Positions 8,171 to 61,596 of a stretch of DNA of 64,000 nt are shown here, piece by piece (within the stretch, counting starts at the first letter, position 1; the number at the start of each line of letters is the position of its first letter). Position numbers and translations under genes: made by a program. This stretch comes from Camelus dromedarius (taxonomy: Eukaryota). The stretch covers positions 5,952,001-6,016,000 of the forward strand of contig NC_087446.1 in NCBI RefSeq assembly GCF_036321535.1, given 5' to 3'. The notes beneath the pieces are model-generated. The model had not been told where the DNA came from. It did no database searches and was given only the letters and a program-made list of their open reading frames with translations.

Positions 8171-9179
8171 CCAGTCTGGTGGCTGCAACCTGGCTTGAGT
8201 CCCACCTGGGGCCCCTGACCAGCCCCTTGGCAGTGACGGGGCCTAAGCAGCCTCCCTGGGTCCAGCTTCTGCCCTAGCCTGATCCATCCTTACCTGTCAT
8301 TTGACCCCATTTGAGAGAGGGGTATACTGAGGCTCAGAAAGTGAGAGATTATCCCCTAGTCACCTTTAGAAACCCAATGCTGATTACCTGGGTTAGTGAC
8401 AAAGTCTATAAATAGATCCTGGTTTCTGCTGTGAGGAGCTCGAATAGGCTGGTGAGAGCTGTCAGGCCCCGATGGGGATGGGGAGGGCCCCACTCTGCCT
8501 AGAAACTCTGCCTAGATGCCCACATTTCAGGCCCAGCCACACCCAGCTTGTACCATGGGCCAGCAGCTCAGCCAGCACCACAAGCTGCTGCCCCAAAAGG
8601 TGGGGAACTCAGGGATGGCTGGGAGGCGACAGGCTGAGTTATTACCCAGGGCTCAGTCTTCAGATGCCAATGCTCTCCCTGGGAGGCCTGACAGCAGCCC
8701 AGGAATGAGCTGCCCCAAGATCTGATGGGCTTCCTTTCCCAGCCCCTTAGGGATGCTCATCCAACCCCTGCCCAGTAGAAGTTGCCACTTACGGCCACAC
8801 CAGAGCAGGAGGAGGACACTCATCTGGGCTCCAACTTGGGGCTCCATCCTGAGTGGCCAGGTCAGTCTGGGCTCTCGAGAGGCTTGGGCAGGACAGGGAA
8901 TAATAAGCCCTGTGGGCCGTAGGGATGACCTAGGGACAGTGGTCAATCTTGAACCCATGTGACAATGAGGTGGCCAGAGCAGGAGAAGGCCATGTGGGGA
9001 CCTTGGAGGAGACATCTTGGCCCTAGTCTTTGCTCTGCTATGACACTGTGTAACCTTGTACTGCTTGTTGGGGCAGGGAGCGTGGACAAAGCCACACTCA
9101 GTTTGTGGGAATTTGAGGCCCCTGAAAGGAGGCAGCCAGACCTGCAGAAGCAGCAGCTGTGGATTTACTGGACACTCTG

Positions 9180-12100
9180 TCATTCACGGTTCTGAGTCTT
9201 GGGGAAGTCAGAGGCTGGGAACCAGCCCAGCCAGAGCTTCCTCAGCAGCTGGGGGACCCAGCCCTCAGGCGTTTCTTCCTTGATGTCCACCTCAGAGGCC
9301 TCTAAAAAGCACAAACAGGCAAGCCCAGTGGGTCCACTTCTGGAAGGAACCTTTCCCCAGGGCCAGGGCACCCTCTGTACCAGGGGAGCAGGGCAGCATT
9401 GATAAAAGGCTAGGGTATTCCTCCAGCACAAGGGGAGTGGTCCCCGAGTCCTGCCAAACCAGGAAGGAGCCAAGGGGGCTCATTCAGGGAAGATAAGGCA
9501 TCTGGCTACCTGGGTTTCTTCCCTCCCCTCCCTGGGGCAGGAGAGTCTGAGAGGAGCTGGGCTATCTGTGACCTCTGCAGGGTCACTGAGATTAGGGAGG
9601 AGGGCAGCCCTGCTACAGCAGGCTGTGGTCAGTTGTCTTACCAGAAGTATATACAGCAATCTCCTTTCGGGCCTTTTTAGTTTCCTGGGAAGGAAGAAGG
9701 GGCGTGGTGGGGGCAAGGTTCTACATTGTGCAGATGGGGAAACTGAAGCCGCACTTAACAAGAAGTCGGGGGAGGCCAGGATTCAGAGCCACTCCGCTTA
9801 CACATGTCTGCTCCTCTCAGCTCCACACAGAGCTGTTCCTCCACTGGGATAGCAGTTTGGCCCAGTCATCTTGGGGGTGCCCCAGCACCCCCCACCACTG
9901 CCCTCCTTCCCCATGGCCTCTCCACCCTGCAGCGCCCTGGGGCTTCTCAGTAAGAGCCATGCTGGGATGTCCCAGTTGAGGCAGGGGCTTCCTTACCTCC
10001 CCTCCTGGAGGCACTGACACAGCCTCCTCCTCAGCCACCTCCTGCCCAGCTGGAATTGGGCTGGCCGCTTCCTCCCCTGGGGATCTCACTTCGCCCTCAT
10101 CCTGAGACAAGACATCCGTCTCCTCCTTGGGGGCAGCATCATTTGGCCCTCCCGTTGTCTTGGGGGTCATGGCCTGCAGGGAGGGTCAGGAGGGCAGAAA
10201 AAGGCAGAAGGGCCCTCTGCTCACCTAACCCCTCCCCATCCTCCACACTTGGAGTGTGTATAGTTCTTTATTTTCAACAGATTTCCCTCCCTTCTCAGCT
10301 TGGGCCGTGGTAGGGCTGTGAGTTTCCTAGAGGGGCCCTGCCACTCTGCCGGGGACTCCTGGCTGTGAGCTCATGGAGCCAGCAGGAGAGAGCCCCAGCC
10401 CTGGGCCCTTCCGAGCAGGCCTCACTTACCTCGGAGTCTTGCTTCTTCCCATTCTTGACTCTGTGTCTCTGCGTAGGGAAATGGGACGTGACATACAGCT
10501 CTGAGTGTGTGGGAGTCGGGCCCATCTTCTTACTGTGTGTGCCTCCCAAGGGTGCCCAGGACAGCCACCCTACGCCAGGGGAAGAGAGGTCCCCAGCCCT
10601 TACCCACCTGGGTAGTCACAGGATAGCACTTATCCATCTGCCCCCACACTGGCCTTAAGGTCTCCCCTATGGGCTGCACAACAAAGAGAGAAAGGAGAGA
10701 GGGAAGGTGAAGTGACATCTTAAGTGCTCAGCGATGCACTAGTCTCCACAGTCAATGCCTGCTGCACAGAGACTCAAAGACTACAAACCAACAATAATTG
10801 ATGTCTTCAGGAAGATAAAACTTTGCATTTATGAAACAAGAGTAGGCTCTGTTCAAAGAGCAATCTCTAAGTCTTTTGTGTGTTGGGGGGGGCAGTAATT
10901 AGTTTTGTTTATGTTTTTATTTATTTTAATGGAGATACTGGGGATTGAACCCAGGACCTCATGCATGCTAAGCACAAGCTCTACCACTGAGCTATACCCT
11001 CCCCCCCTGAATTCTTTAAAAACAAAAATATGATCATGGGAATTAAAAATCCAATCAAAGTGTAGAAGATAAAGTTGAAAAAAGCATTCCCCAGAAAGAA
11101 CAGAGAGAAGAGGTCAGGAGCTCCCACAGCGAAATCAGAAGGAAGAGAGTCAACACTTGAAGTGGCAGGGGGAGAGACCAAGTAAGTATGTGAGCTTTTT
11201 AAGACAGTTTCCCAAAGACGAGGGACATGAGTTTCCAGAAAAGAAGGAATCACCAAGTGTCCAGGACAACGGATGAAGGAGACCCACCCCAGATTATGTC
11301 ATTAATAGATTTCAAAACACTGAGGATGAAGAGAAGAACCTAAAAACTTCCAGAAACACACAGAAAAAAGTCTGTTTTAGGAATTCGACTTTCATCAACA
11401 CCAATCTTTGAGGTCAGAAAACAGTGAGGATCTTCAAAATCTGTGAGAAAATTATTTCTAGTCTAGAATTCTAACCTAGCCAAACTCTTAGCTAAGTATG
11501 AAGTAAGACCTTTTCAGACATACTACCTCAAGACAACCCCTCAGGAAGGAACCAGAGGTTATGCTCCACCGAAAGAGAGAGTAACACGGGCTCCCACACG
11601 TAACAAAAGTGAAGCGTCCTCCAGAATGACAGCGAAGGGAGGCCCCAGCTGCGCAGCAGGCCTCAAGGGCATCCTGTCCAGATGGAAACAGGATGGAGGG
11701 CTCCATGAGGTAATGTCTCCAGGAAAATGATCATATTGATAAACAGCCTAATTTGTCTAATTGTATTGCAAGGAAATTTTTTTTTTGTTAGAGAGCTTGG
11801 GTGAATTAATTATAGGTACAGAGAAAACTAAAAACAATTTTAAAGAGGAAAAACCAAAATTATACACAACTATGGTATGCTACATGATTCAGCTAGGAAT
11901 ATTATTTATATAGTCTAAAAATTACAATATACACCTATTAGAATGGCTTTTTTTTTTTAAGGCAAATACTGGAAATGATGTAGAACAAGTGGAACCTCTC
12001 ATCCATTGCTGGTGAGAATGCAGAATGGGTACCAGACACTTTGGGAAAGCTTGACAGTTTCCTACAAAACCAAATATACACTTCCCACATGGCCCAACAA

Positions 12101-13790
12101 CCCCACTGCGAGGAATTTGCCTAAAGTGAAAGGAAAGCCTACTTTCACATAAAACTTGTACAGGAATATTTATAGTGGTTTTATCTGTAATTGTCAAAAA
12201 CTGGAAACAATCTAAGTGTCTCAACTGGTGAATGGACAAACCATGGAACATCTACACAGTGGACAACTACTCAGCAATAAGAAGGAACAAACCACTGCTG
12301 CACACAGCTACTGGGTGGACCTCAAATGCACTGTGCTGAGTGAAAGAAACAAGACTCAAAAGACCACATATATTGGATGTTTCCATTTATATGACAGTTC
12401 TGCAAAGGCAAAACTACAGGAACAGAAAACTGTCCACTGGATGTCAGGGGCTGGGAGTGGGGGAAGAGTTGACTACAAGTGAGTATGGGGGAGTTTTTTG
12501 AAATGATGGAGCCGTTCTGCATCTTGGTTGTGGTGGCAGTTACACAACTGTATACTTTGTCAAAACTCATAGAACTGTACACTAAAAAAGGATGAATTTT
12601 AATCTATATAAATAATACCTTAATTTTTAAAAAAGTGAATAAAAAGAGACCACTCTAGGGGAGGGGCTTAAAAGCCAAAATGATATAAAAATCAGGAAAA
12701 AAGCAATATGATACGTAAATTTTTTTCACAATTGAAAATGTCATTACTCAGATTAAAACATTTACAGTGCCAAAAATTAGGCTGTAACTATGCTGGAAGG
12801 CTGGAGAGAGATGAAATGTGTGTTGGCAATAAGTGTGCACTTGTTAGAAAGCTAAATCCTCATCTTCCATTGTAGGAATTCACTGGATAATGTTTAAATC
12901 TGAAAAATCAAGACAAATAAGGATAAGCTTTCTACTTAGAACCATAGGGGCAAAACCAAAGGCTATGACTAGAAAGGCTGGAAGCTGGAAAGGTGGTGAG
13001 AATCGTGGATGGAGATGGTTGGTGTAAAATGCATCTAGTTTTTTGTTTCAAGTCTTAAAACTTTGACTCATCAAACTATATGGATACCTTTGGAGACAAT
13101 AAAACTTTTTAAGATGGAAATTTGGTGTATATATATATATACACATATATTTTAAAGGAATCAACATTGGACTCAGTGATCCCCAAGGCACCTGCCAACA
13201 TGGGCCTCGTTAGGGGCTTTCCAATCTCTGAATACACTCCCTAAATGTGTAGCGCACACTTCTCAGTGTTGCTCAGTCACAGATAACCTTGTCCCCATGA
13301 AAATCCCCTCTTCCCAACAGCACTAGGCAGAGAGCAGAAGGCCTCCAGAGACCAGGTATGTAGTTCTGTCCTGTCACCTTGGGCATCCTGGGTCAAGTCA
13401 CTGTCCGTCTGGGAGCCTAAGATTCCTCATCTACAAAGTGGGAGCTTCTGAGTTGCTGTGAGGTTTAAACGGCGTAATAGATGGGCAACACCTAATCTAG
13501 CACGTGGCCCTCAGTGAGCATCCAGCATCCATTTGTGTTTTCCTCACAGAGGGCTGGGAGTAGGGGCTTCTGCCACAGGTTCTCGAACCTGGCACATGAA
13601 AGAGGGTATGTAACCCCAGGCAAGTGTCCTGCTCACCACCACCCCATTCACATATGAGTACAGAACCACATTTCAGGGCTACTCATACCCGTTAGGGGTT
13701 ATATGTTCCTTAAGGTTTGTCTGGGTCACTGCCACAGAGCCCTGAAGTTACCATATAGCCAGCCTGTGAGGGGCAGGGCCTCCTTGACAG

Positions 13791-13826
<36 letters not shown>

Positions 13827-15315
13827 GTTGGTTGAACATTTGAGGTCAAATAACATGACCTCTATTTGGGCTACAGTGAGATAGTCCCAGCCTCCTGACC
13901 CTGACAGAGGTCCCTACCTGTGATGAGCCCCCAGCAATCTCATGGTCAGGGTCTGCTTTCCCCAGAGACCCCTGAAAATAGTAGTACACCACTCCTGCAA
14001 GTAGGTGAAAAAAGACTAGTTAAAACATTTAGAAGAGTGATGCAGTTATTTTTAAATGTCAGTATTTACAATATGCCAGAAATCATATCCTTTAAAACTA
14101 TTTAAATGTGTGATGAAAGATACTAGGTATTAACTTAAAATGTGTGAGGGGGTAGTTTTTCAAAAGATACGCAAGCAAGTTGCAGATCATGCTGTGGGAC
14201 ATTATTAGGTTGTATGGGGTTTTCTGGTTTCTCTGTGGGTGTTTGGGGGAGGATGCAGGGGGTTTAGAGTGAGACATGAGTTCAAATCCCAGTTTCACTA
14301 TGAAAGTGCAGAGGGAAGAAAGGGAGAAATAAGGCCAGCCGTGGCTCCGAGCAGCGTGGCCAGCCCTGGGCAGCCAGGTACATGGCAGTTTCAGGAGGCC
14401 TCTGGGAATCCTGGTGGGGAGCAGCAGACTGGGGTGGCTCTGAGAAGAGAACTTGTTCACTGAGTCCTGCCATCATCCCCAACTCACCCCAGCACCCAGG
14501 CCCTTACCTGCAAGGATGAAGATTTGTACTACATACAGGAACTTGTAGAGCCTGGAAGGAAAGCAGAGCTGAGTGTGAGGCTGGGGTCTCTTGTGCCCTC
14601 ACCAGTGGGTGCTGGTTTTCTTCCCAGTCCAAGCCCCAAGACCTACTCTTCCAGGGAAGGTCCAATCAATACTTGTGGATGAATAAATCCATCAGCTGTA
14701 ATGGGGCTCAGCCTGGGCTCCCTGCTGACTAGCCGGCATGACTCTGTGCCTCTGCCTACTTAGAAAGTCAGACGTGGAGCATGGAGCCACAAGAACCCCT
14801 GCTCCCCTCCTTTCTCCTCTCCTTCTTTACTTGTTTATATAGGTCCATCTTGCCTCTCCAGCCAGAAGGCAGGGACTCAGCCTTGGCTGGGCATTCACAG
14901 TTGTTTATTCAAGTGCTGGATTAGCTCTTCTCCCCACAGCCCTCCAAAGCCCTCTCTACTCTGGACTGACAGATCCCACAACCTGGATTAGAAATAATAT
15001 TCCATTGTCCATCCTGTTCTTTTAGGACCCCTCCCTTGGGACAAACAGAGCATTTTTGCACTGCTAAGATGATGGCTCCCTGCCTACACACATACACACA
15101 TACAAAAGCACATCCCACCTGTCAGAACCAGGCCCTCCACTCTGACCCTAAGTCCCAGAGACACTATAACACTCAGGGAAAGGGGAATATAGAATCCTAT
15201 TTTCCCTTCCTCGTGAGACCAAGTTGGGGGGTTCCCTTTCCTGATCTTTCAGGGCATGGCAACAGGGCCCACCTAAACTTTACCTCTCTCTCTGGCAGCA
15301 CATACCAAGCACCAT
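9180..15315 (-). CDS. Predicted unrecognised 8-exon gene encoding a 199-aa single-pass membrane protein
   Basis: Coding exons (minus): 15315-15284, 14551-14508, 13994-13918, 10673-10608, 10468-10430, 10173-9997, 9684-9642, 9301-9180 (32+44+77+66+39+177+43+122 = 600 nt). All introns GT-AG with long pyrimidine tracts; phases 2,1,0,0,0,0,1 join without stops; start aaaATGg. Protein: MVLGMCCQRERLYKFLYVVQIFILAGVVYYYFQGSLGKADPDHEIAGGSSQPIGETLRPVWGQMDKCYPVTTQRHRVKNGKKQDSEAMTPKTTGGPNDAAPKEETDVLSQDEGEVRSPGEEAASPIPAGQEVAEEEAVSVPPGGEETKKARKEIAVYTSEASEVDIKEETPEGWVPQLLRKLWLGWFPASDFPKTQNRE. No expression data. Confidence 0.7.
10872..11007 (-). mobile_element. Camelid tRNA-derived SINE (Vic-1-like)
   Basis: Minus strand reads gggagggtatagctcagtggtagagcttgtgcttagcatgcatgaggtcctgggttcaatccccagt, with A box, B box and A-rich tail. 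Confidence 0.85.
11020..12640 (+). mobile_element. Decayed LINE-1 fragments (ORF1-like, then L1MC/ME-type 3' end) in intron 3 of the predicted gene
   Basis: Typical L1 3' text (ggaacctctcatccattgctggtgagaatgcag; aaaactcatagaactgtacactaaaa); no intact ORF. Confidence 0.65.
13792..13823. repeat. (AC)16 microsatellite
   Basis: Direct reading. Confidence 0.95.
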
Positions 15316-16598
15316 TTTCAGTCTAAGAAGAAAAGATAGGCAGCAGTCAGTGCATCACACAGGCCCAGGATCCTGGTGTTCCTTTACCCTGTGGCTTGCA
15401 GGGAGACTGCAGTGGGCTAGAGGCAGTTAGGGGAACGGCAGGACCTCCACCAGCAAGGTTCATCCAGGGGAAAGCCTGCTGGTCACAGCAGGAGGCCAAA
15501 CTCAGGATGGAGTGGGCTAGCACTAGGAGCTTAGAAAATGCTCGGGAATTTCTCCCAAGACCTCAGAGCCCCAGACAAAAGCTGTTTCAATGTCCTCAGA
15601 GTTGGAAAGGTAGGTCCTGGGGAATCAGGATGGAAAAGGGGGGGTGGGGTTGAGAGTGGATTAAGGAAAAAGGTAGAGTTCTATTGAATATTTGGTGCAA
15701 AATGACCCCAGGTGTAGGCGGCTAAGTATAATAGTAAATAAAAACAATTAAAAACTACCAACAATTTAAAGCATTTTCCAGGTTATGCAGCGTTTTTGGG
15801 ATCATCTTGGGAGCACCGGGAGGAGACTCCCTGGCCTCCGCAAAAGCGCCCTGTCTAGAGGCCTGCCTTCAGTGTTGAGCTGCGTATGAACAGACACACT
15901 GTGAAGCCACGGTCCCGGGGGGAGATGGCCCTCAGTGTGGCCTCGTAAGGCTCCGTCTCCCAAGTGAGTTCCCCGTTCTCCACAGAGACTATTTCAGAAT
16001 CTCTCTTTAAACCTCTAACCCCTCTTCTGCCTCCCTCACTTTTGGCAGGAACACAGGTACCATCAGATGCACGTTCCCTAGACTTTCTGCTACCAAACTC
16101 ACCCATCCTCTGCTTCTCACAGGTCATTTCCTCTTCAGGGGAGGAGGCTGTGACCCTTCTCTGGGGCCATCCCCCTCCTGTGCCCCATCCACCCAGATTC
16201 TCCAACCGGGGTATCTGGGGGTCTCCTCCCTCACTTGTATATTCAGCCGTCCCTTCTCTTGTGGCTCCTCCTCATCAGCATTTGAACACATTACCCATGT
16301 CTTCCATTAAAAGAAAAAGACTTCTCCCTTGAACTCATATCCCTTCTCCAGATACCATTCTAATGGTCCCCTACCCTGCACACCAGTCTCCTTGAGAGAG
16401 CTGTCCAGGGTATCTGTCTTCACTCCACTCCACCTCTCCGTCACTCCACAACCCACTTCAATCTGTTTCTGTCCCCCTCAAACTTGGAAATCTCTCTCAC
16501 CAGGTCGCCAATATCCTCCCTGTCACCAAATCCAAGGGGCCTTTTTCAGGCCTCAGCTCACTGCATCTCTCTGCAGGACACCCTTCACATCGACTCAC

Positions 16599-16686
16599 CT
16601 TCCCTGAGAATACTGCCAGCAACATGTTCAACAGTAAGCTTTTTAGTCACCTGTAACTGGGTGTGAGCGGAGTCATCAGGTTTTTT
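16599..16686 (-). other. Candidate 5' UTR exon of the predicted minus-strand gene
   Basis: Long pyrimidine tract ending ttctctcag, 88-nt body, donor AAG|GTGAGT. It has an in-frame TGA relative to the main ORF, so it would be non-coding. Confidence 0.45.
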
Positions 16687-17539
16687 CTGAGAGAAGGTTT
16701 TGAGTGAGAGAAGAAGAGGAGGAAAGGGGAACACTAAGCAGGAGGGATACAGAAAAGGTGGCTAAGAGTCGCAAAGACAAATTTCACCTGCTTGGGTGGT
16801 TTACTGAGGGCAGCCTTTTGAAACTGCTTACCAAATCTGCCAACCTTGATGATCTGAGCAGTTTGCAGTACACAGGCAGTATTCACCTTCCCTCAGACTC
16901 CAGGACTGAGACTGAGAAGGGCACAGGAGCCCAGCTAAGTCTGGGAGTCCAATCACAGACCCTCCCTTCCACAAGCTGTGTGGTGTCTGTGTGTGACATC
17001 ATGTCTTAGGGGGCTTTATGACAGGACAACCTCTCCTACCTTGACAGAGTAGTATGTCATTGCCACAGGGTGGTTTTAAATCCCCGTGTCAGAGGCAGCA
17101 CCTTTGTAGTATCTCTTCAGTTCCATTCAATGCCATGAATTCTGCTTGAGCACCTACAATGTGCCAAAATCTACGCAAATTCCGGTAGGGACACAAAGAC
17201 ACAAAGGTGTGTAAGACTCAGTCTTGTCACATAACACAATACTCTTATTTTTCAAATCAAAAACAAGAACACAGCCTGACTATAAGTGTCATCCATTCGT
17301 CCATTCATTCAACCAGTGTCTGCTGAACTTATATTTCGGGCCAGGAATAATGCTGAGAGGATAGAAAGGTAAACAGGACGCAGAGATGGCCCTTAAGGAG
17401 CTTGAAGACATCAAATAGACAGCTTCTGATTCAAGACAATAACTTCTATACCCTCCCCAAAAAACTATGAATGTAACAAAATAATAATTACAAAACTATG
17501 GTGGTTAAAACTGAGGAATGCCTTAGTTTCACAAACACA

Positions 17540-19746
17540 TAAAATATTTACCAAGATGGATCATATTCTCAACCATAAAACAAGCCTCAATAATTTAAAA
17601 GATTAAAGTCATTTAAAGTATGTTCTTTGACCACATGGAATCAAAATAGAAATCAGTAACAGAAAGATCCCTGAGAAATCTCCAAATATTTGGAAACTAA
17701 ACAACACACCTTTACATAATATATGGGTGAAATAATCAAAAGGAAAGAAAGTATTTTGAACTAAATGAAAAGAAAAAAAATCTCAAAATTTGTGGGATGC
17801 AGCTAAAACAGTACATAGAAGGAAATTTACAAACTAAAACATCTATATGAGAAAATAAGAAATGTCTCAAATCAAGGACCTCAGTTTCTACTTTAAGAAA
17901 CTAGAAATGGAGAAGCAAATAAAAGCCAAAGTAAGCACAAGAAGGGAAATTTTAAAATTCAAAGTGGAAAGAAATGAGGTAGGAAACAGAAAAATAGAAA
18001 AAATCAATAAAACGAAAAGAGCAACAGAATGTACAATCTTCTAGATAGAATAGATCAGGAAAAAATAAATCAAATGCCAATGTTCAACATCAAGAATGGT
18101 AAAGGTGATACTGATGCAGATTCTATAGATACTAAAATGATCATAAGAGAACATTATGAACAATGAGATGCCACTAACTTTGACAATGTAGATGAAACAG
18201 ACAAAATCTTAAAAAAAAAAAAAAAAGCCCAGTACCAAAGCACATGCAAGAAGAAATATACAACCTGAATCATTCTGTATCTGTTAAAGACATTGAACTT
18301 ATTTAACTTCCCCACAAAGAAAACTTCAGTTCCATATGGCTTCACTAATAAATTCTATCAAACTTTTAAGGAAGAAATAATATCAATTCTATATAAACTC
18401 TTCCAGAAAAATAGGAGGAAATATTTCCCATCTCATTCTATGAGGGCAGAATTATCTGATATCAAAACCAGACAAAGATGACATAAGAAAACTACAAAAC
18501 AACTTCTTTCATAAATATAGATGCAAATATTATTAACAAAATCTTATTAAACTGAAACCAACAATACATAAAAAGGATAATACACCATTACCAAAGGAGT
18601 TTACTTTCAGGAATGTAAGGTTGGTTCAACATTCAAAAACCAACCATTATAACTCACCATACTAGTAGACTAAAAAAAAAAATCATGTGGTTATCTCAAC
18701 AGATACATAAATAACATTTAACAAAATCAACATTTGTTCCTGAAAACAACCTCCCAGAAATCTAGAAGTAGTTGGAACATCCTCAACCTGATGAAGGACA
18801 TCTACGAAAAACTTAGAGCTAACAACATACCTGATGGTAAAATACTGAATGTTTTCCCCTTAAATTCAGGAATAAGGCAAGGATATCTGCCCCTGTTGCT
18901 TCTATACAACATTGTCCTGGAAGTTTTAGACAATGAACTAAGTTGAGAAATAGAAGTAACTGCCCCTTACTCTATCAGTAAACCTACAACACTCCTGAAT
19001 ATGGCAATGATGTCAGTGAAAAAGTGTAAGATCAGACTTCCCTTCCCATGCCTAATCTAGTCCAAAAATCAACCTAACATTTGAAAATCTGATTTATTAT
19101 CACTTGTCAATTTTTCTCCTGAAGTCAAATTGTACCCTTTGAGTAACAGAGTTCTAGAATCAGAGCCTCATGACTACAATGATTCAGCCCTTTACATATA
19201 TCACTTATATTATTTGTGTTAATTTCTTAAGAGAGCTGTAACATTTTCCCCATCAATTTCGGCTGCAAACTGCAAATGAGACAAAACCCTTTCACTTGCA
19301 TATATATCATAATGTTGCTCACTGATTATACTAATATTTTTCAAATTTGATAATCACAATTAGTCATTAAATGATGATCACTTTTTTCAATGAATTACAA
19401 AGATTAAAATTTTAAAAATAAAAGAGAGAAGTAAAAGGCAACCAGATTAGAAAGGAAGAAGTAAAACTGTCTTATTTTGAAGACAACATGATTGTGTGTA
19501 AAATCCTACAGGATCATCCAAAAAGCTACTAGATATAGCAAGGTGAAGGATACAAGATCAATATATAAAAATCAATTATATTTTCTGTGAACCTAAAACT
19601 GCTCTAAAAATTGTATTAAAAAATCAATTGTATTTCTATAAAATAGCAGTGAACAATTCAGCATTGAAATTTTAAAAACACTAATTATAATAGCATCAAA
19701 AATATGAAATACTCTGACAAAATGTGTGTAAAATCTGTACACTAAA
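17540..19746 (+). mobile_element. Old LINE-1 ORF2 (EN/RT region), degenerate, interrupted by insertions
   Basis: Short ORFs resemble L1 ORF2 (MSQIKDLSFYFKKLE; KLRANNIPDGKILNVFPLNSGIRQGYLPLLLLYNIVLEVL); many stops and frameshifts. Confidence 0.85.
18960..19420 (+). other. About 460-bp non-L1 insert within the L1 ORF2; possible retroposed mRNA 3' end
   Basis: L1 text breaks after agaagtaa (18952-18959) and resumes at agaagtaa (19427-19434). Insert ends with ATTAAA (19403-19408) and an A-rich run. Confidence 0.45.
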
Positions 19747-22700
19747 GAGATTTCTGGTCAAGACAGTGGAGTGGTAGGACCACGAGACTGCCTCTCTTCT
19801 TGAGTACAACAAAACCATAACTGAATGCTAAACAACCATTGAAAAAAGACTGGAACCTAGCAAAGATCTTCTGCAAATGGAGTCATAAGGAACCACAGCA
19901 GGACGGTAGGAGGGGCGTGCTTACGATATAATTGGGCCCCATATCTCTCGGGTGGGCGACCCGCAAGCTGGAGGTTTGTTAAGTCACAGAGGCCCTCACA
20001 CAGGACTGAGAACTCTAAGCCCCACGTCAGTCTCCCCAGCTCGGTCTCAGCATTGGAAGAGAAGGAGACCCCAGGATACCTGGTTTTGAAGGACAGGGGA
20101 GCTTGGCTCTGGGACCCTCACAGGACTAGGGGAAATGGAGACTCCACTGGCTTGGGAAGCATACACGGAAACTCACGTGCACCAGGTCCAAGGGCAGAGG
20201 CAGTGATTTCATAGGAACCTGGGCCAGACCTGCCTGCTGGATTTGGAGAGTCTCCTGGGGACGTGGGGTAAGGCTTTGGCTCACTCAAGAGACATAAAAG
20301 CCGGTGGCAGACATTTAGGGAGTGCTAATCTACCTGAGCTTTCCTGGAGGCTGACATCTTGTTTGGATCATTAGCACCAAGACCTAGACCCACCCAACGG
20401 CCTGTAGGGAAGCCTCAGGCCAAACAACATACAGGGTGGGAACACAGCCTCACTCATCAGCAGACTTCCTAAGCCACAAAGACCTCTAGACACAGCCCTA
20501 CCCACAAGAGGTTCAGGACCAAGCTTCAACCAGCAGTGGGCAGGCACTGTCTCCTCCTGCCAGGAAACCAGCATATGCCTCTAGTTCAGCTTCATCCACC
20601 AGGGGGCAGATACAAGAAATAAGAAAACAATAATCCCAAAGCCTGTGGAAGGAATCCACAAACACAGAAAGATAGACGATATGAGGCCAAGGCAGAAGAT
20701 AAAATCCCAGAAGAAGAAATAAATGATGAGGAAATAGGCAATTTATCTGAGAAAGAGTTTAAAGTAATGATGGCCAAGATGTTCAGAGAACTCAAGAGAA
20801 GTACAGATGCACAGAGCGAAGTTTTTAGCAAAGAGCTGGAAAATATAAAGAATACCCAAACAGAGTTGAAGAATAAAATCACTGAAGTGAATAATACACC
20901 AGAGGAACCAAGAATAGACTAAATGAGGCAGAAGAAGGGATCAGTGAGCTAAAAGACAGATTAGTGGAAATCACTACTTCAGAACAGAAAAAAGAATGAA
21001 AAGAAATGAGGATAGGTTAAGAGAACTTTGGGACAGCATGAAGCGTGCTGATATTTGCATTACAGAGGTCCCAGGAAGAGAAGAGAGAGAGAAAAGACCT
21101 GAGAAAATTTTTGGAGAGATAATCACTGAAAACTTCCCCAACTTGGAAAACGGAACAGTCAAACAAGTCCAGGAAGCACAGAGAGGACCACACAGAATCA
21201 ACACAAAGAGGAACACACCAAGGCACATCATCATCAAATTGACAACAAGAATAAGGAGAAAATATTAAAATCAGAGAGAGAAAAGCAATAAATAACATAC
21301 AAGGGAACTCCCATATGGTTATCAGATGATTTTTCAGTAGAAACTCTACAGGCCAGAGGGAGTGGCACAATATACTTAAAGTGATGAAAGCGGAAAACTT
21401 ACAACCAAGAATACTCTATCCAGCAAGGCTCTTGTTCAGAATTGACGGAGAAATCAAAAGCTTCACAGATAAACAAAAGCTAAAAGATTTCAGCACCATC
21501 AAACCAGCTTTACAACAAATGTTAAAGGACCTTCTCTAGTCATCAAACTATAAAAAAAGAGAACAAAAAGAAGAAAGGGAAAAGAAAAGAGAGACCTACA
21601 AAAGATTGCTTTGGCTGTTCAGGGTCTTTTGTGGTTCCTTATAAATTTTGGAGTTGTTTGTTCTAGTTCTGCGAGGAATGTCATGAGTATTTCGATGGGA
21701 GTTGCGCTGGATCTGTGGATTGCTTTGGGTAGTGTGGCCATTTTGATAGTGTTGATTCTTCCAATCCAGGAACACAACAAATCTTTCCATTTCTTTGTGA
21801 CATTTTGGTTTTTGGAGTATAGGTAATCGCCTTTGTTAAGTTTACTTCTCGGTATTTTGTTGTTTTTGATGTAATGGAAATGTCTCTGCCAGTTATAAAA
21901 TTCTGGTTTTTGAAGTGAATAAAAAAAAAAAAGAATGAAGGGCTGCAAATGGCAAAATATCCTTCTTTATTATGGGTGAATTGTATTCATACACACACAC
22001 ACACACTGCATCTTCATTTTCTATTCAACTATTAATGTGCACTTAGGATGCGTCCATATCTTGGCAATTATAAATAATGTTGCTGTTAATAGCAGGCTGT
22101 ATGTATCTTCTTGAATTCATTCTTATTTTGTGGTTGGCTTTATTCCTTTGACAACTATGTAAGTTTGAAAAGCTAAAGCTCTAAACATCCTTAGAAACAA
22201 TGAATAGTACATATATGTAAATTTAAAAATATATGTGCAGTAAAAAAAAAGATCTATCAAGCTATGAAAGACATGGAAGAAACTTAAAAAGACATATTAC
22301 TAAATGAAAGAAGCCAGTCTGAAAAGGCTACAAACTGTACGATTCCAACCAAATGACATTCTGGAAAAGGCACACCTACAGAAACAATAAAAAGATCATG
22401 GTTTTTAGGGGTTTGGGGATAGGGAGGTAGGGAGGAATGAATAGATGGAGCACAAGGGATTTTTAGAGCAATGAAATTATTCTCTATGATACTATAGTGA
22501 TGGCTACATGTCATTACGCATTTGTCAAAACCCATAGAATGTACAACATCAAGAGTGAACCCTAATGTAAACTATGGACTTTGGTTGATAATAACGTGCC
22601 CATGTTGGTTCATCGATTGTACCAGATATGCACACTGATGAGGGATGTTGAGGGTAGGGGAGTGTATATGTGTGGGTGGGGAGGGCTATGTGCAAACTCT

Positions 22701-22756
22701 CTGTATTTTCTGTTCAATTCTTCTGTGAACCTGAAACTGCTAAAGTCTATTTTAAA
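19747..22756 (+). mobile_element. TSD-flanked, internally deleted and rearranged LINE-1 (5' UTR, ORF1, inverted ORF2 piece, 3' UTR)
   Basis: 17-bp direct repeat aaaatctgtacactaaa at 19730-19746 and 22757-22773. ORF1-like ORF MKRNEDRLRELWDSMKRADICITEVP at 20996. Minus-strand ORF2 peptide [24 protein letters not shown] at about 21604-21885. Confidence 0.8.
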
Positions 22757-24990
22757 AAAATCTGTACACTAAAAACTACAAAACACTGTTGAGAGAAACT
22801 AAAGACCTAAATAAATGAAGAGATATACAATGGTCATGAATCAGAAGATTCAGAATTATTAAGATGTCAATTCCACCCTCAAATTGATCTACAGATTCAA
22901 AGAAATTGCATTTTAAAATTTCAGCAAAATTTTTTGGCTGTTGAAATTGATATGCTGTTTCTCAAGTTCATATGGAAGTGCAAAGCACCTACAATAGCCA
23001 AACAATTTTGAAAAAATAAAGTTGGACAGTAATCAAGACAGTATGAGATTGTTGATGTCAAGATAGATGGAACAGAATAGAGTCTAGACATATATTGTCA
23101 ATTGATTTTAGACAAAGGTGCAAATGCAATTTAGTGGAGGAAATACAGTATTTTCAATAAATGGTCCTAGAACAATTGGGTATTCATATAAAAAATGAAC
23201 CTTGATTCACATCTCACACTATATACAAAAATTGACTCAAAATTGATCACAGAACTAGATCTAAAACCTAAAATTCCAGAGAAAATCTAACTTGAAAAGA
23301 TGCNNNNNNNNNNNNNNNNNNNNNNNNNNNNNNNNNNNNNNNNNNNNNNNNNNNNNNNNNNNNNNNNNNNNNNNNNNNNNNNNNNNNNNNNNNNNNNNNN
23401 NNNNNNNNNNNNNNNNNNNNNNNNNNNNNNNNNNNNNNNNNNNNNNNNNNNNNNNNNNNNNNNNNNNNNNNNNNNNNNNNNNNNNNNNNGCAACATGGCT
23501 GGAACTAGAGATTATCATTTTAAGTGAAATATGTCAGACAGAGAAAGACAATTATCATATAACACCTATACATGGAATCTAAAAAAAAAAATGACACAAA
23601 TGAACTTATTTATACACCAGAAACAGAGTCACAGATATAGAAGACAAACTATAGTTACCAAAGGGGAAAGGAGACAAAGGGAGGGATATATTAAGAGTTT
23701 GGGATTAACATATACACACTACTATATGTAAAATAGATTATCAACAAAGACCTATTGTATAGCACAGGGAATTCAATATCTTGTCATTATCTATAACAGT
23801 AAAGAATCTGAAAAAGAATGTGTATATATATTCCTACACACATATATGTACAATTTTTAAATCCTAAAATTATTAAACTTCCAGAAGAAAACATAGAAAA
23901 TCCATTGACTAGGCAAAGATTTCTCAATATACCACCCAAATCATGATCCATAACCAAAAAAACCTGATAAACTGGCCTTCATCAAAAGAAAAAAATCTGC
24001 TCCTCTGAACACTGTTCAGAGAATAGAAAGGGAAGCCACAGACTAGGAGAAAATATTTACAAATTGTATGTCTAATAAAGAACTTTTTGTCTAGAATTTT
24101 AAAGTACCTTCAAATTTCAAAATTAATTAAGTAAATAATTAATTATTTAATTGGACAAAAGATCTGAACAGATACTTCACAAAAGAAGATAGACAGCAAA
24201 CAAGTATATGAAAAGACCTTCAACATTATTGGTCATTAGGGAAATGCAAATTAAAACCGTAGTAAGATAACACTACACACCTGTTAGACTATCTCAAATC
24301 AGGAAGACTAATCATACCAAATATTGACGAGAAATGGAATAACTGAAACTCTCAACCACTGCTGATGGGAATATAAAATGATACAAGTACTTTTTGGAGT
24401 TCAGAAGTTTCTTTAAAAATAAAAACATACACCTACGATATCACATAGCCATTTCACTCTAGATATTTACTCAAGAAAGAAAGCATATTCCATACAAAGA
24501 CTTGCACACAAATATTCGTAACAACTTTATCTGTAACAGACCCAAACTGGAAACACTCCAAATGTCCATGAGCCAGTAAATAAATAAACAAGTTGTGGTA
24601 TATCTACATAATGGAATATACTCAGCAGTAAAAGAAATGAACTATTGATATCTGTAACAGTAGGGATGAATCTGAATTTTTTTCTGAGTGAAAGAAGTCA
24701 AAGAAGAATACATACTATATGATAATATAAAACTTTACAAAATGTAAATAAATTTCAGTGACAGAAAGTGTATCAGTGGTTGCCTGGGAATGGGGGTGCA
24801 GACAGGGAGAGATGAGATGAAGAGATTACAAAAGTGTATGAGAAAGCTTTTGGGGTGATAGAGATGCTCATTCTCTTAACTGTGGTGATGGTTTCACAGG
24901 TGTATAATACGTTAAAATATCAAATTATACACATTAAACATGTGCAGTTCATTATAAGTCAATTATATACCAATGAAGTTCTTTTTAAAA
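22757..24990 (+). mobile_element. Continuation of the old LINE-1 (ORF2 end and 3' UTR) with a nested younger L1 3' end at about 23490-23850
   Basis: L1 ORF2 text resumes after the TSD. Nested piece reads caacatggctggaactagagattatcattttaagtgaa... N gap at 23304-23489. Confidence 0.75.
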
Positions 24991-25299
24991 AAGAGTGAAG
25001 TTATATGAACTATTCTATTCTCTTTCTCTAGACCTTCAACATTTTAAATATCTCTAAACATTTTAACAGGTACTCATATAATCTCCCAACATAGAACATA
25101 GATATTTCTTTATAAGGATAAGAAACAAAGTCCACGAAAAGAATGGCTGTCCAAAAGAAGGAATTCAGCATGATTCAGAGCAATGGTCCCCTATGTAACA
25201 GTTACCCAAAAAATAGGAGAAAACTAGAAACATTCTATTTTATATTCTCAACAGTGTTCAAGAAGACGTATCTATGAAAGAGCAGACAGTAATAAAAAT

Positions 25300-27710
25300 T
25301 TCATCTGATATAGGGCAACAGCTAAATTTTAAAATGTAATAGAAGCAGTGAACAGCAAGTTGGATACTACAAACAACTGAATTAGTGAATTAAAAGAGAA
25401 ACCCAGGAAATTTTTCCAGACTGCAGAAGCAAAAAGTAAAGAATAGAAATATTGAGCGAAAAGGTGAGAGATATGGAGATTCAAATGACTGAATTGAACA
25501 GACATATAATAAGAATACCAGGAGGAAACAAGTCGAGGGAGAAGAAACAAAATAAATAAAAGAAAAATGTTCCTTGAAATGAAAGAAGCCTTGACTCTTA
25601 AATCACATGCTTTTTAATTAATGAGGCAAAGGTAACATACAGGGTTCCATACACACACATATCCTGGTAAGATTTTTGAATGTTAAGAACTAAGAAAACA
25701 TTAAGGCAGGAGAAGGAAAAAAAATAGGTTCTTACTCAAAAAAGAATAAAGAATCAGAATGGCATCAGAATTACTACATGAAATACTAAGTGTTAGAGGA
25801 CAGTGGAGTAATGCTGTACAGAATTTTGAGGGAAAATGATTGTGACTCAAGAATTCTATGCTGAGCCAAGTCAGCTTTCAGTGTCAGGTCAACAGTAAGG
25901 TTTTCAGGACCTGCTGAGTCCAGACATCAGACTGCCACTCATGTACACTGCCTCTCTCTTCTACCTAAGCAACAGAGGTAAAAGAAAGTAGATCTCAGAA
26001 TAAATCCATAGTAGTGCTGGAAAGCAAACAGGGGTGCCCTGCTGAACCAGAAGCCATAAGGAATCTCTCAAAAATGGAAGACAGGCAGCATAAGGTTGGC
26101 AGAGAAAATGAAAGCACAAAATACACGCAGGAGAACATCACTGTGAAAGGTGGAAGGTCTCTGAAAGTCTCTGTGCATCAAAGTGACAGATCTGGGGAGC
26201 AGGAAAAAAACCTGTCAGGATGATTGGTTGGGGGGATTCATGTGAAGCAAAAATGTGAAGCAAAATTGACTTTCTTTCCCCACCTGTGGCAAGCAGACAA
26301 AAACAGATGCTTCAATCACCAGGTGAGAGCCATGAATGTGAGAATCCTTGGCCAGAGAAGCGCTAGATGGCTGCTAACACCCAGCAGGAATGGGGAGCCG
26401 CAGTTCTCCAAAGTCTAACCACAAAGTACCCTACCTAGCAATGTCATGCCTTGACTCCACAGAGACTAATGGCACTCCACAGTAAATAAAATCATTCAAG
26501 GAGAATCCATCAGAGAATTTCAAAGACAGACTTGAGCATTTAGCCAGAAGTTGCCAAACATTTGAAGAAAATCAACACTAGAAAGAGACACCAAGCTATA
26601 TAAGTTAAAAAAACTAATGACTAAGGAAAAGAGTTAATAGAGAAAATCAAAGGAGACTTTAAAGTAAGTATTATTAAAATCCTCAAAAAAGATAAAAGAA
26701 GACATGGTACCCATCAAACGTGACTTGTCTGTTAGGGAAGAGAAACAGCTATAATGGAAATAAAAACCGAGCTGGTGAAACGTTGGCTTCCCATTACACT
26801 TAGGCTTTTCAAAGACTTTCAGCCACAAGGGAGTAGTTGATACTGGATTTACCTTCCCACAATGAACAAACATAAAAGGGGACAAAATACATCTAACTAC
26901 TTATATGCATGGAAAGCAACCAATGCAGGGCTGTCTTACATCCACCCAGGTTTACTCCTGAAGATATTTTCCTAAGTATGACCTGAAGCGGTGGAGCCAA
27001 GACAGAGAACAGAATTCTTACTGGGTATAGAAGGCAGAGACTGAAGTTTAGGGCTGCTAATGCTACAAAGATCTGAAGGTCAGGGAACTGAAGAGGAAAG
27101 AACCATAGACAAGGAGTCTAAAAGGTCTGCATATAGATGTTCCTCAAGTACTGACCAACTGCCAGGTTGAGCAGATAAGATACCCTCGCACACAGCTTCT
27201 GGGAGCTGAGAGCTGGTGGAGAAATTCAGAGTCACACAGAGCTGGAGTGACACTGGAGACTGGGCCTGGCCAGAGTGAAGAGATCTTGGTGCATACCTCA
27301 GGCACTCAGTTAAGGCTCCAGAAAAGCATCACCCTAGGAATTAGGACTACTAGAAGTATGGGCAAAACTAAAATAGTTCCTATCGATTGAAGCCTAAATT
27401 CAAGCCTCAAAGCCTACCAAAACAAAACCTGATATTCCTTTAGAGAAAGTTAACAGAATCTACAACATATCCACGATGTCCAGCTTAAAATAAAAAGTTA
27501 CTAAGCTCACAAAGAAGCAGGACAAATTAACTGATAATTAAGAGATAGTCAAAGAAGTTGATACATGGATAATCTAGACATTGGAGTTAGCAGAGGACTT
27601 TTAAAAATAGCTGTAATTAGTACGTTAAAGAAAATAGACAAAAAGGTAGACAAAACAGATGAAGAACTACAGTAATTCAACAGAGAATTAGAATCTGTAA
27701 AAAATCAAAT
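25300..27710 (+). mobile_element. Highly decayed L1 5'/ORF1-type remnants
   Basis: A-rich purine skew and L1 ORF1-like phrases; subfamily not resolved. Confidence 0.4.
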
Positions 27711-27715
27711 AGACA

Positions 27716-28380
27716 CTGTGGTAGGGCAACCACTAAGACAGTCCCTAATAATCTCCGCTTCCTAGTAATCATTTGAGTGTGACTTGGATTTATAGAATAA
27801 ATTTGGTAGAAGTGAGATGTCACTTCCAAAATAAGTTTACAAAAAAGACTATATAGCGGGGGAGAGGGTATAGCTCAGTGGTAAAGTGCACACAAGGTCC
27901 TGGGTTCAATCCCCAGTGCTTATATGTGTATGTATAGATACACATGTATACATGTATATACATTTATTCATACACACACACACACACACACATATGTATA
28001 CATATACATATGTATGTATACCTAACTACCTCCCCGCCCCCCAAAAAAGTCTGTGGCTTCCATCTTGACTATTTACTCTCACCCTCTGAATGCTTGCCAT
28101 GGGAGAAAACAGTTGCCATACAATGAGGCAGCCCTGTGAAGAGGCCCATGAGTGGATACCACCTCACACTCTCTTCCCCAGCCCAGCTGAGCCCTCAGTG
28201 AGACCACAGTGCCAGGTGGCTGACTGCCACCTCCTGAGGGATCTTGAACCAGAGGAACACAAATAAGCCTATACTGGACTCCTAACAGGGCCCACAGGAA
28301 ACTGTGAGATAATAAATGTTTGTTGTTTTTAGCTGATAAATTTTGAGGTAATTTGTTCATAGCAATAGATAAAATAGACA
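27716..28380 (+). mobile_element. MaLR (MLT1-type) solo LTR interrupted by a SINE
   Basis: Starts tgtggtaggg. Contains gagatgtcacttcc, gaggcccatg, and gaaactgtgagataataaatgtttgttgttt...gcaatagataa, typical of MLT1 3' ends. Confidence 0.7.
27856..28040 (+). mobile_element. Camelid SINE (Vic-1-like) with internal deletion and a TA/CA microsatellite in its tail
   Basis: gagggtatagctcagtggtaaagtgcacacaaggtcctgggttcaatccccagt, then (TA)/(CA) repeats, then cctaactacctccccgcccccc. Confidence 0.8.
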
Positions 28381-28689
28381 TTCTAAACACAAAATACAAA
28401 GCGTGACATCAAGAACTCACTGGACCAAATGGTTTAATAGCAGACACAGCAGAAAACAGAAGTAGTGTGGGGAACAGGTACAATATGCTTTATGGGTAAT
28501 AAATGCTCTGTTCCCTGAACGCCATCCAGAGGTCTTGTATTTCTCTTAGGGTCTGAATATACATACACATACTATGTGTAAAAAATGCTATGTTCCTGTT
28601 AGGAAGACTCAGTGGTATAAAAATATCATTTCTATGTTCAATTACAATCTATATTCAGTGTACTCTCAATCAGAATCCTGATGAGATTA

Positions 28690-34240: not shown

Positions 34241-35299
34241 AGACTTTTTTTTTCAATGAATAAGGATATTAAACACTAAATTCATGATAGCGGTGACTCC
34301 TAGAGGAGGCAGGAGCATAGACCAGGTTAGAAATATGCAGGTAGCTATCAGAGGTAGAGCACAAACTCTTGGAGCCAGCTGAGTCTCAACCCAATATTGT
34401 CAAGTAACTTAGTCTCTGCGTCTCAGTTTTCTCATCTCTAAAAGGGGTATAACAGAGCTCAACTCATGTGTCATGAGGCTTACACAAGTTAATGCGCCTG
34501 AAGAATGTAAAACACTGGTAACCAGCAGCATGTTAACCAATGACATAAACCTTAACTGTATTACAACTACTTGAGGTGGGTACTGAAGTTCAAAAGTTTC
34601 CATTCTATTATGCTTTATAACTACGTATCTTACACGCTTTAACGCATAACTCATTTAAATGTACAAATACATTAAAAATAATACAGGAAAAAATTCAATT
34701 TTTTACCCTTTAAAATGGGAAAGACTGGGCTAGATGCAGGTCCGTCTCCCATGCTGGCTGGGGTCCCTAAGCCCTGATCCCTGCTCTTTCCCCAACACTC
34801 ACAAGGTGCCTGTCAACTGCACTTTCAGAAAAGACCAGTGGACTCCAGGCAGGAGTCAGAGGAGAAACCTAACATGGCAAGTGACCTAGACTGCACCACC
34901 TCAGTTTCCCCACCTGTAAAATGGGGGCACTAACCGTAGCCACCTGATCTAGGAGATTAATGATGACTAATCAGAATATCTATGCCCGGCCTAACATGTC
35001 GTTAGCTGTTATATTTCCCTTTACCCTTCCAGGCTCCCCTTGATGTTCAGAGAGAACCTCAGTAGGAAAATGTCAGGAGAGAGACCCAGAATATACGACC
35101 TAAGGTTCCTCCCAGCACCACAATTCTGTGCTGTTTTTTCATAGTCTGGCATAAAAACGTCCTTGTCTAAAATGAGCTGGTGATATAACCTACCTCCCTG
35201 GGCTGTGTTAGAAGCGTCGAGAAGCCAAAGGCCAGGAAAGCGCTTTCACATCTAGACCGCACTTCAAAAGAGTTGGTTAATGGAGAAAAAGAAAAAAGT

Positions 35300-42121
<6,822 letters not shown>

Positions 42122-46355: not shown

Positions 46356-46620
46356 CTTCCAGCTCCGCCCCTAGCCCGGGCACCTGGTCCCCACCGCCCG
46401 GCCCCGGTGACGCCCCCCGGAAGAACGTCGCCCCAAACCTCGCGAGGCTTTCGGGATTTGACGAGAGATCCAGTTTACAGACTCGCGCGGTGCGCTTAGT
46501 TCCTGTTGCGGAAGGAAAGAGGTATTTGTCACCGGCCCGACGTGGTGATGTCACGAGGATGTCGCCGATGCCCGGTACACCCCTCATATCTAGCCTGGTG
46601 GGCAGGACCATCAGATGGGG
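46050..46620. promoter_or_regulatory. SMDT1 CpG-island promoter / exon 1
   Basis: CpG-rich; YY1 core AAGATGGCG (minus, 46350-46358) overlaps the start codon. Confidence 0.7.
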
Positions 46621-61466: not shown

Positions 61467-61596
61467 TTTTTTTTTTTTTTGGTGGGGGGAGGTAATTAGG
61501 TTTATTTATTTATTTCTAGAAGAGGTACTGGGGATTGAACCCAGGACCTCGTGCATGCTAAACATGTGCTCTACCCTTGAGCTATACCCTCCCCCT
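61467..61596 (-). mobile_element. Camelid SINE (Vic-1-like), with TSD and poly(A)
   Basis: Same head as the other two copies; poly-T on plus strand; TSD cccagttgat at 61457-61466 and 61597-61606. Confidence 0.9.

Follow-up and report, generated by a model that had tools for sequence, protein, structure and literature searches.

The window, a 64,000-nucleotide stretch of Camelus dromedarius contig NC_087446.1, very probably carries on its minus strand the camel copy of an old, already annotated and functionally uncharacterised mammalian protein-coding gene. Great apes have lost the three 5' coding exons of this gene and retain the rest in a decaying state, in keeping with the annotation of the human locus as the long non-coding RNA (lncRNA) NDUFA6-DT.

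A sequence-only reading had proposed an eight-exon gene on the minus strand from 15315 to 9180, and scripted exon location confirmed this structure to the base. The exons of 32/44/77/66/39/177/43/122 nt are joined into 600 nt, corresponding to 199 codons and a TGA stop codon, and the interval 9180-15315 is free of N runs. The coding exons and the adjacent poly(A) signal variant are as follows.

15284..15322, minus strand: coding exon 1, with 32 nt of CDS from the ATG at 15315-15313; donor GTAAAG
14508..14551, minus strand: coding exon 2, 44 nt (44 nt in 8/8 species); start of the predicted transmembrane helix
13918..13994, minus strand: coding exon 3, 77 nt; end of the predicted transmembrane helix (invariant YYY) and juxtamembrane segment
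10608..10673, minus strand: coding exon 4, 66 nt; most conserved motif
10430..10468, minus strand: coding exon 5, 39 nt; basic cassette exon
9997..10173, minus strand: coding exon 6, 177 nt; predicted acidic disordered region
9642..9684, minus strand: coding exon 7, 43 nt (43 nt in the seven species with complete models, sloth excepted)
9180..9301, minus strand: coding exon 8, 119 nt plus the TGA at 9182-9180; Trp-rich C-terminal helix and conserved tail
9164..9169, minus strand: poly(A) signal variant AGTAAA, 10 nt past the stop codon

The seven donors were as originally quoted (GTAAAG, GTAAGG, GTAGGG, GTGGGT, GTAAGT, GTAAGG, and GTAAGA), and in all seven introns the acceptor AG is preceded by a pyrimidine-rich stretch. 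The start context aaaATGg was verified, as was the observation that only the required frame is open in the 66- and 177-nt exons, which likewise holds for the last exon. The short exons let ORF scanning miss the gene. Exon 1, whose coding part yields the N-terminal MVLGMCCQRE(R), has a 7-nt 5' leader between an acceptor AG (15324-15323) and the ATG. This acceptor is conserved, and the whale model, which contains an upstream coding exon, splices there; thus, exon 1 is internal, and the transcription start lies further upstream. In exon 4, the residues R58, P59, W61, G62, K66, C67, Y68, and Q73 are invariant among the orthologues.

The descriptions of the gene as hidden and of its product as unrecognised were not borne out, as the exact 199-aa product has been deposited as XP_031319224.1, KAB1269693.1, XP_032348238.1, and XP_032348240.1. 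Whether an automated LOC model existed had been left as a question, and the answer is LOC105091983 (C. dromedarius), with an identical protein at LOC102520392 (C. ferus) and a 97% identical one at LOC116277507 of the alpaca (Vicugna pacos). These three and LOC105073055 (C. bactrianus) represent the same gene with the same exons and do not differ from the gene in the window; genome annotation therefore gains nothing here, the gene and its exact protein being already in RefSeq. The deposited Camelus and Vicugna entries are named only 'uncharacterized protein' or 'hypothetical protein', with no function attached, and the database search matched the 199-aa protein to about 120 mammalian 'uncharacterized protein' models. 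Literature searches on the LOC identifiers returned one incidental list entry only; the pig LOC110260835 is among the differentially expressed genes in a kidney and liver RNA-seq study (PMC10578457), which, like the existence of multiple RefSeq isoforms, is an indirect hint of expression. The protein is a candidate for a first functional characterisation in cells of dog, pig, or cattle.

Several isoforms could be related to the window. The 186-aa RefSeq isoform skips exon 5 and threads exactly onto the window. Exon 6 contains an internal alternative donor (GTGAGA) after its first 84 nt (10173-10090), giving a short form that is found in one deposited isoform threading onto the window and is annotated in degu and sloth. 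The 256-aa C. ferus and 171-aa C. bactrianus isoforms thread inexactly, with few-residue differences in each, which is compatible with a C. dromedarius origin of the window.

The placement of the gene between CYP2D and NDUFA6 was correct, with CYP2D exons on the plus strand at approximately 3.8-8.1 kb of the window, NDUFA6 on the plus strand from approximately 35.8 to 42.1 kb, and SMDT1 as the next gene. The camel transcript models begin at, or within, the promoter region of NDUFA6, read from the other strand, and run as far as a conserved poly(A) signal, where they stand tail-to-tail with CYP2D. Two alternative 5' exons were located.

35194..35355, minus strand: alternative first coding exon of C. 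bactrianus LOC105073055 X1; exact threading, donor GTAGGT
36110..36232 (approximate tblastn limits), minus strand: upstream exon of the 256-aa C. ferus X1 RefSeq isoform; 95% identity, E 3e-23

The first of these is spliced straight to exon 4 and is separated by approximately 460 bp from the start codon of NDUFA6, which is read from the other strand. The second lies antisense inside NDUFA6 intron 1; a further piece of the 256-aa isoform falls at 38045-37995. With alternative 5' exons starting approximately 0.5 kb from NDUFA6 exon 1, the gene occupies the position that NDUFA6-DT holds in human. The tail-to-tail arrangement is shared by every orthologue fetched: a p450 gene lies downstream in convergent orientation in whale, dog, degu, hippo, wapiti, Myotis, and sloth. 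The gorilla locus showed the order NDUFA6, gene, p450 directly, and the orangutan copy is also flanked by NDUFA6.

The short distance between the alternative first exon and the start of the oppositely oriented NDUFA6, together with SMDT1 as the next gene along, might be read as a sign of a mitochondrial role with NDUFA6 and SMDT1, in which co-regulation from a shared promoter reflects shared function. We consider this quite improbable, since many genes share a bidirectional promoter without this implying a common function, the N-terminus of the protein is not presequence-like, the charges flanking its helix suggest ER-type N-in insertion, and apes do without the gene while keeping NDUFA6 and SMDT1.

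The exon pattern 32/44/77/66/39/84-189/43/122 with GT-AG introns recurs in whale, dog, degu, hippo, wapiti, and Myotis, and sloth shares it for exons 1-6. All differences in exon length among the orthologues are multiples of 3, with phases kept; exon 3, for example, is 77 nt long in seven species and, still in frame, 71 nt long in degu. An AATAAA stands at the site matching the camel poly(A) signal, 6-10 nt past the stop codon, in whale, dog, degu, hippo, wapiti, and Myotis. A dN/dS analysis of the exons had been proposed as a check, and the codon model gave an omega of 0.45 with rejection of omega=1 (2dlnL=42.6, p~7e-11), the pairwise dN/dS values ranging from 0.35 to 0.60. The N- and C-terminal blocks both yielded an omega of 0.39 (p=2e-6 and 7e-6, respectively), and the middle block, corresponding to the exon 6 region, had an omega of 0.68, which is not significantly below 1. 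The constraint on the ORF is only moderate (omega 0.45). Differences at the three codon positions numbered 663/708/967, indicating weak periodicity, and among close species the exons were barely above short introns in conservation. Since seven other mammals share the exon structure and the frame, with significant purifying selection, the structure is beyond chance, and these two lines of comparative evidence argue for the genuine protein-coding gene that the sequence-only reading had proposed.

That the camel locus is itself an lncRNA, with the 600-nt ORF a splicing accident lacking a translated product, would agree with the literature treating the human counterpart solely as an lncRNA, as well as with the moderate constraint and the near-neutral middle of the ORF. 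This reading is very improbable in our estimation, as the ORF and exon phases are intact in at least seven further species over about 100 My with all indels in frame, neutrality is rejected as above, and conservation extends to the start context and to the poly(A) signal beside the stop codon. A marsupial homologue, moreover, retains the N- and C-terminal blocks. Where the gene decays (apes and sloth), lesions are visible, which makes the absence of lesions elsewhere meaningful.

The protein-coding gene is also widely distributed. Homologues were found in carnivores, bats, horses, hedgehog, pangolin, rodents, lagomorphs, elephant, xenarthrans, and one marsupial, with models recovered from elephant, sloth, and Tamandua. 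The Tasmanian devil protein G3WHN0 matches the family profile with an E of 8e-32 and retains the exon-4 motif and both terminal blocks, which implies that the gene was already present in the therian ancestor. A profile search of 1.84 billion representatives yielded relatives in therian mammals only and gave no sign of a paralogous family. The proposal that the gene is lineage-restricted is therefore refuted, the family spanning Laurasiatheria, Glires, Afrotheria, and Xenarthra in addition to a marsupial. A young gene restricted to camelids or artiodactyls would account for the absence of a human protein and for nothing else, and homologues in so many placental orders and a marsupial leave this explanation practically no probability. 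No mouse or rat models were among the named matches; the gene may have been lost in murids too.

In the great apes, nhmmer searches of gorilla and orangutan found exons 4-8 (E 1e-29 to 1e-57) in a degraded state. They lie at 41.4-42.9 kb of the fetched gorilla locus, and the orangutan locus holds two copies of them, at 51.8-53.4 and 63.9-65.4 kb. Exons 1-3, which encode the start codon and the membrane helix, were undetectable by nhmmer across the whole NDUFA6-CYP2D interval of both species; leave-one-out positive controls detected the same exons in degu and sloth (E 1e-25 to 1e-45). The gorilla lesions include a change of the exon-5 acceptor from AG to GG and of the stop codon from TGA to GAA. 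Comparison of gorilla exons 4-8 with other species gave dN/dS values of 0.46-0.91, against a median of 0.45 among intact species, a suggestive though not decisive sign of relaxation. Neither database search returned a primate protein with the N-terminal part, and no human protein was among the matches. As for the earlier suggestion of a gene lost in humans, the loss is indirectly supported by the gorilla and orangutan lesions and by the human lncRNA annotation, and human loss itself would follow from these by parsimony.

NDUFA6-DT had been named as what the syntenic human interval carries, and its position is supported by a published description of it as downstream of CYP2D6 (PMC10324673). This RNA (formerly NDUFA6-AS1) is divergent from or antisense to NDUFA6 and runs to the 3' side of CYP2D6, and great-ape models at this position contain the homologous exons 4-8; it differs from the camel gene in that it has been annotated and studied in humans only as a non-coding RNA. 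The locus resembles the fossil lncRNAs of lost coding genes (Hezroni et al. 2017, PMC5577775; PMC10195156), being transcribed and carrying remnants of coding exons of a gene that is intact in other mammals. It differs from those cases in seemingly being unlisted there, as neither NDUFA6-DT nor NDUFA6-AS1 appears in the supplements of PMC5577775 or the main text of PMC10195156, and a report of loss to lncRNA for NDUFA6-DT was not found in the literature searched. On balance, NDUFA6-DT is probably the transcribed relic of a therian coding gene at least ~160 My old, which encodes an orphan single-pass membrane family with neither a Pfam entry nor a publication, is still under selection in most placental orders, and was independently degraded in great apes and sloths. 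The great-ape locus, as a decayed transcript unit at the NDUFA6-DT position, is relevant to studies of human gene loss and of NDUFA6-DT, which has featured in many cancer-signature papers.

The description of the product as a membrane protein is supported by the prediction of one hydrophobic helix at residues ~12-32 (KD 1.66), with flanking charges of +2 on the N-terminal and -2 on the C-terminal side, in a protein of pI 4.9 whose remainder holds no second hydrophobic segment. An AlphaFold2 model built with a 23-sequence alignment was of low confidence overall (pLDDT 49.7), with helices only at residues 5-35 and 176-183 and the rest below a pLDDT of 50. The first helix is among the most conserved parts of the protein, with invariant residues L16, L24, G26, and YYY29-31. 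Pfam scans of the camel protein and 23 orthologues yielded no match, and a PDB profile search found no chain at E<=1. The predicted architecture comprises an N-terminal transmembrane helix, a conserved motif with a cysteine, a disordered acidic middle, and a Trp-rich helix at the C-terminus. There is some comparative value in an orphan family of membrane proteins, without name, domain, or publication, that is conserved from marsupials to camels.

The single helix with its positive N-flank and negative C-flank predicts a type II (N-in signal-anchor) orientation. By such sequence rules, the product would be a bitopic protein with its short N-terminus in the cytosol, where the paired cysteines 6-7 at the cytosolic face would be candidate palmitoylation sites. 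The ~165 residues beyond the helix would be luminal or extracellular, comprising the motif with its single invariant cysteine (a candidate for an intermolecular disulfide), an acidic and intrinsically disordered spacer of variable length, and an amphipathic Trp-rich C-terminal helix that might engage a partner or turn back onto the membrane. We offer this mechanism as a whole, including the topology, palmitoylation, disulfide, and helix roles, only as a tentative proposal.

Alternatively, the hydrophobic segment could be a cleaved signal peptide and the product secreted, with the acidic part released and possibly processed at the exon 5 basic cluster. The N-terminal location of the segment, the basic cluster following the conserved motif, and the lack of a further hydrophobic segment would all suit secretion. 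We nevertheless regard it as unlikely, given that a 14-residue n-region precedes the segment and that AlphaFold2 predicts a long helix at 5-35 with an ~18-residue hydrophobic core and no small-residue cleavage motif after it. The degree of helix conservation would be unusual for a signal peptide, and the basic cluster does not follow the R-X-K/R-R pattern and belongs to an optional cassette exon. The product, a putative signal-anchor protein, has no sequence relationship to any Pfam family or PDB chain; its likeness to small single-pass membrane proteins with disordered ectodomains or tails, such as the products of small integral membrane protein genes, is architectural only, consisting of a length of ~200 aa, one transmembrane helix, a disordered remainder, and short exons.

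The eight-exon minus-strand gene between CYP2D and NDUFA6 (RefSeq LOC105091983) was placed by minus-strand reading of 9000-15500 and by script, and the positions, lengths, donors and ORF of the sequence-only reading were reproduced exactly. The spliced coding exons, numbered in transcript order, yield a 600-nt ORF (199 aa) that starts in the context aaaATGg.

Coding exons of LOC105091983 and neighbouring features (window positions)
15315-15284 (-), exon 1, 32 nt
14551-14508 (-), exon 2, 44 nt
13994-13918 (-), exon 3, 77 nt
10673-10608 (-), exon 4, 66 nt
10468-10430 (-), exon 5, 39 nt
10173-9997 (-), exon 6, 177 nt
9684-9642 (-), exon 7, 43 nt
9301-9180 (-), exon 8, 122 nt
~3.8-8.1 kb (+), CYP2D exons
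~35.8 to 42.1 kb (+), NDUFA6
46098-46370 (-), open frame presumably resembling SMDT1 (EMRE) exon 1
47315-48220 (-), open frame that we take to be PHETA2-like
53.8-57 kb (+), open frames presumably resembling NAGA exons

The acceptors were of the polypyrimidine-AG type, the required frame was the sole open frame in exons 4, 6 and 8, and no assembly gaps were found within the exon interval (9180-15315). SMDT1, PHETA2 and NAGA, recognised by eye from translations, were taken to lie to the right of NDUFA6, presumably in the gene order of human 22q13.2. The orangutan locus independently has PH-domain and DDDD-domain genes adjoining NDUFA6. Two tRNA-like elements, at 10930-11001 (-) and 61520-61591 (-), attained the Rfam tRNA gathering score; the former sits in intron 3 ahead of an A-rich tail and resembles a tRNA-derived SINE, not a tRNA gene.

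The gene is already annotated and is not the discovery of a hidden gene. Searching a 5.8-billion-cluster protein collection returned 120 homologues, of which the source-named ones were all generic 'uncharacterized', 'hypothetical' or 'unnamed' mammalian protein models. By exact look-up, the identical 199-aa sequence was found deposited as XP_031319224.1 (LOC105091983) and KAB1269693.1 in C. dromedarius and as XP_032348238.1 / XP_032348240.1 (LOC102520392) in C. ferus, with additional isoforms beside it. The description of the gene as hidden and unrecognised thus does not hold, and the question whether an automated LOC model exists is answered in the affirmative. Two public models of this locus are misleadingly named, namely P0212 from Pongo abelii ('essential MCU regulator, mitochondrial isoform X1', a model merged with SMDT1) and P0145 from Manis pentadactyla ('Inactive Ubiquitin Carboxyl-Terminal Hydrolase Mindy-4B'); in both cases the sequence lacks the protein it is named for.

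The coding interpretation proved right, given the conserved exon pattern and an omega of 0.45. Orthologous loci were compared from Rice's whale, dog, degu, hippopotamus, wapiti, Myotis and two-toed sloth, and a convergent p450 gene lay downstream of the orthologue in all seven. With each protein threaded onto its own species' DNA, the pattern 32/44/77/66/39/variable/43/122 recurred with GT-AG introns, and the only length differences (77 vs 71, 66 vs 69, and 84/156/177/189 for exon 6) were multiples of three. Pairwise dN/dS was 0.35-0.60 (Nei-Gojobori), and the codon model for seven species (omega 0.45) gave lnL -2148.44 vs -2169.76 for omega=1 (2dlnL 42.6, p about 7e-11). Omega was 0.39 in both exons 1-4 (p 2e-6) and exons 7-8 (p 7e-6), and 0.68, indistinguishable from neutral, in the acidic middle (exons 5-6). 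Differences by codon position numbered 663/708/967. In close relatives, exons were hardly more conserved than short introns, and the contrast widened with distance (camel-dog, 0.83 in the CDS vs 0.67-0.71 in introns); constraint on the ORF is moderate, not strong. AATAAA occurred 6-10 nt past the stop codon in 6/6 other species checked, the camel variant being AGTAAA at 9169-9164 (-). Judged from these comparisons, LOC105091983 is a real protein-coding gene.

Several RefSeq isoforms of the gene threaded exactly onto the window.

Alternative forms of LOC105091983
186-aa isoform (-), without the 39-nt exon 5; exact threading
202-aa isoform, C. bactrianus LOC105073055 X1 (-), start at 35355-35194, spliced straight to exon 4; exact threading
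Older model (-), donor inside exon 6 after its first 84 nt; exact threading
256-aa C. ferus isoform, upstream pieces 36232-36110 and 38045-37995, antisense within NDUFA6 intron 1

The internal GT donor divides exon 6 into a short part (10090-10173) and a 93-nt extension (9997-10089, both minus strand). The short form is annotated in degu, sloth and some ape models; laurasiatherian models include the extension, whose evolution is close to neutral. Because a conserved acceptor precedes the first coding exon, transcription starts further upstream. The gene occupies roughly 9.1-38 kb of the window and is tail-to-tail with CYP2D at its 3' end; its 5' exons lie near or inside NDUFA6, making it a divergent or antisense partner of that gene. 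Human NDUFA6-DT (formerly NDUFA6-AS1) has this layout; a CYP2D6 long-read paper placed it 'downstream of CYP2D6' (PMC10324673). The ~20 kb from the first coding exon to the NDUFA6 promoter (16000-34000) is AT-rich (GC 0.28-0.43), contains five N runs along with fragments of LINE-like ORFs, and lies entirely within the long first intron of the isoforms that begin close to that promoter.

Named homologues came from Cetartiodactyla, Perissodactyla, Carnivora, Chiroptera, Eulipotyphla and Pholidota, and also from several rodent families, lagomorphs, elephant, sloth and Tamandua; neither a mouse nor a rat model was among the named matches. Against 1.84 billion representatives, a profile search matched the Tasmanian devil protein G3WHN0 (E 8e-32), which retains the N-terminal helix, exon-4 motif and C-terminal block without the acidic exon-6 region, and found neither relatives outside therians nor a paralogous family. 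The gene is therefore older than the marsupial-placental split, and this distribution, which refutes a lineage-restricted origin, identifies the family as an ancient therian gene.

Neither the protein-cluster search nor the profile search found a primate protein with the N-terminal part. Gorilla LOC115931941, orangutan LOC100458161 and chimpanzee LOC134809697 showed homology to exons 4-8 only, with unrelated N-termini. The gorilla locus had the expected order (NDUFA6, gene, p450 gene), and exon HMMs from eight species matched exons 4-8 (E 1e-31 to 1e-57) and gave no hit to exons 1-3 across the whole 53-kb interval. The orangutan locus, from PHETA2 to beyond two CYP2D genes, likewise gave matches to exons 4-8 and none to exons 1-3. 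Leave-one-out controls recovered exons 1-3 in degu and sloth (E 1e-25 to 1e-45), which gives weight to their absence in apes. Orangutan exons 4-8 occurred in two copies (L009 51819-53367 and 63870-65422), each immediately downstream of one of the CYP2D paralogues; the gene's 3' half was therefore co-duplicated in the CYP2D tandem duplication in apes. Gorilla lesions included GG for AG at the exon-5 acceptor, GAA at the stop codon and a scrambled C-terminal helix motif. The proposal that humans lost the gene is thus supported through gorilla and orangutan; by parsimony, the loss would predate the great-ape ancestor and so include humans. In sloth, the exon-8 homologue (L007 15856-15975) had an in-frame stop within the C-terminal motif and replacements of two conserved tryptophans, and the RefSeq model bypasses the stop by reading into intron 7; the gene probably decayed independently in sloths. 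Tamandua models likewise look aberrant.

No Pfam or PDB relative of the 199-aa protein was found. The protein (pI 4.9; cysteines 6, 7 and 67; no N-glycosylation sequons) has a single hydrophobic segment at residues about 12-32 (Kyte-Doolittle 1.66; net flank charges +2 N-terminally and -2 C-terminally). AlphaFold2 with 23 orthologues predicted only helix 5-35 and a short helix 176-183, the remainder having pLDDT < 50. Invariant residues were L16, L24, G26 and Y29-31 in the N-terminal helix, R58, P59, W61, G62, K66, C67, Y68 and Q73 in the exon-4 motif, and W186. Under the positive-inside rule, the protein may be an N-in signal-anchor (type II) protein, with a predicted exoplasmic region that would be mostly disordered and acidic, with a single conserved cysteine, and a putative amphipathic, Trp-rich C-terminal helix.

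Among the matches listed, papers naming NDUFA6-DT or NDUFA6-AS1 treat it as a lncRNA throughout, usually as an expression-signature biomarker. NDUFA6-DT was absent from those supplements of a 'fossil lncRNA' study (PMC5577775) that were searched and from the main text of a 2023 gene-loss-relic study (PMC10195156). What interest remains lies in evolution, as a lncRNA fossil case for which no listing was found in the literature searched, and in an uncharacterised orphan membrane protein family. Of the family's LOC identifiers, a literature mention was found for one alone, pig LOC110260835, which is listed with other differentially expressed genes of kidney and liver (PMC10578457).
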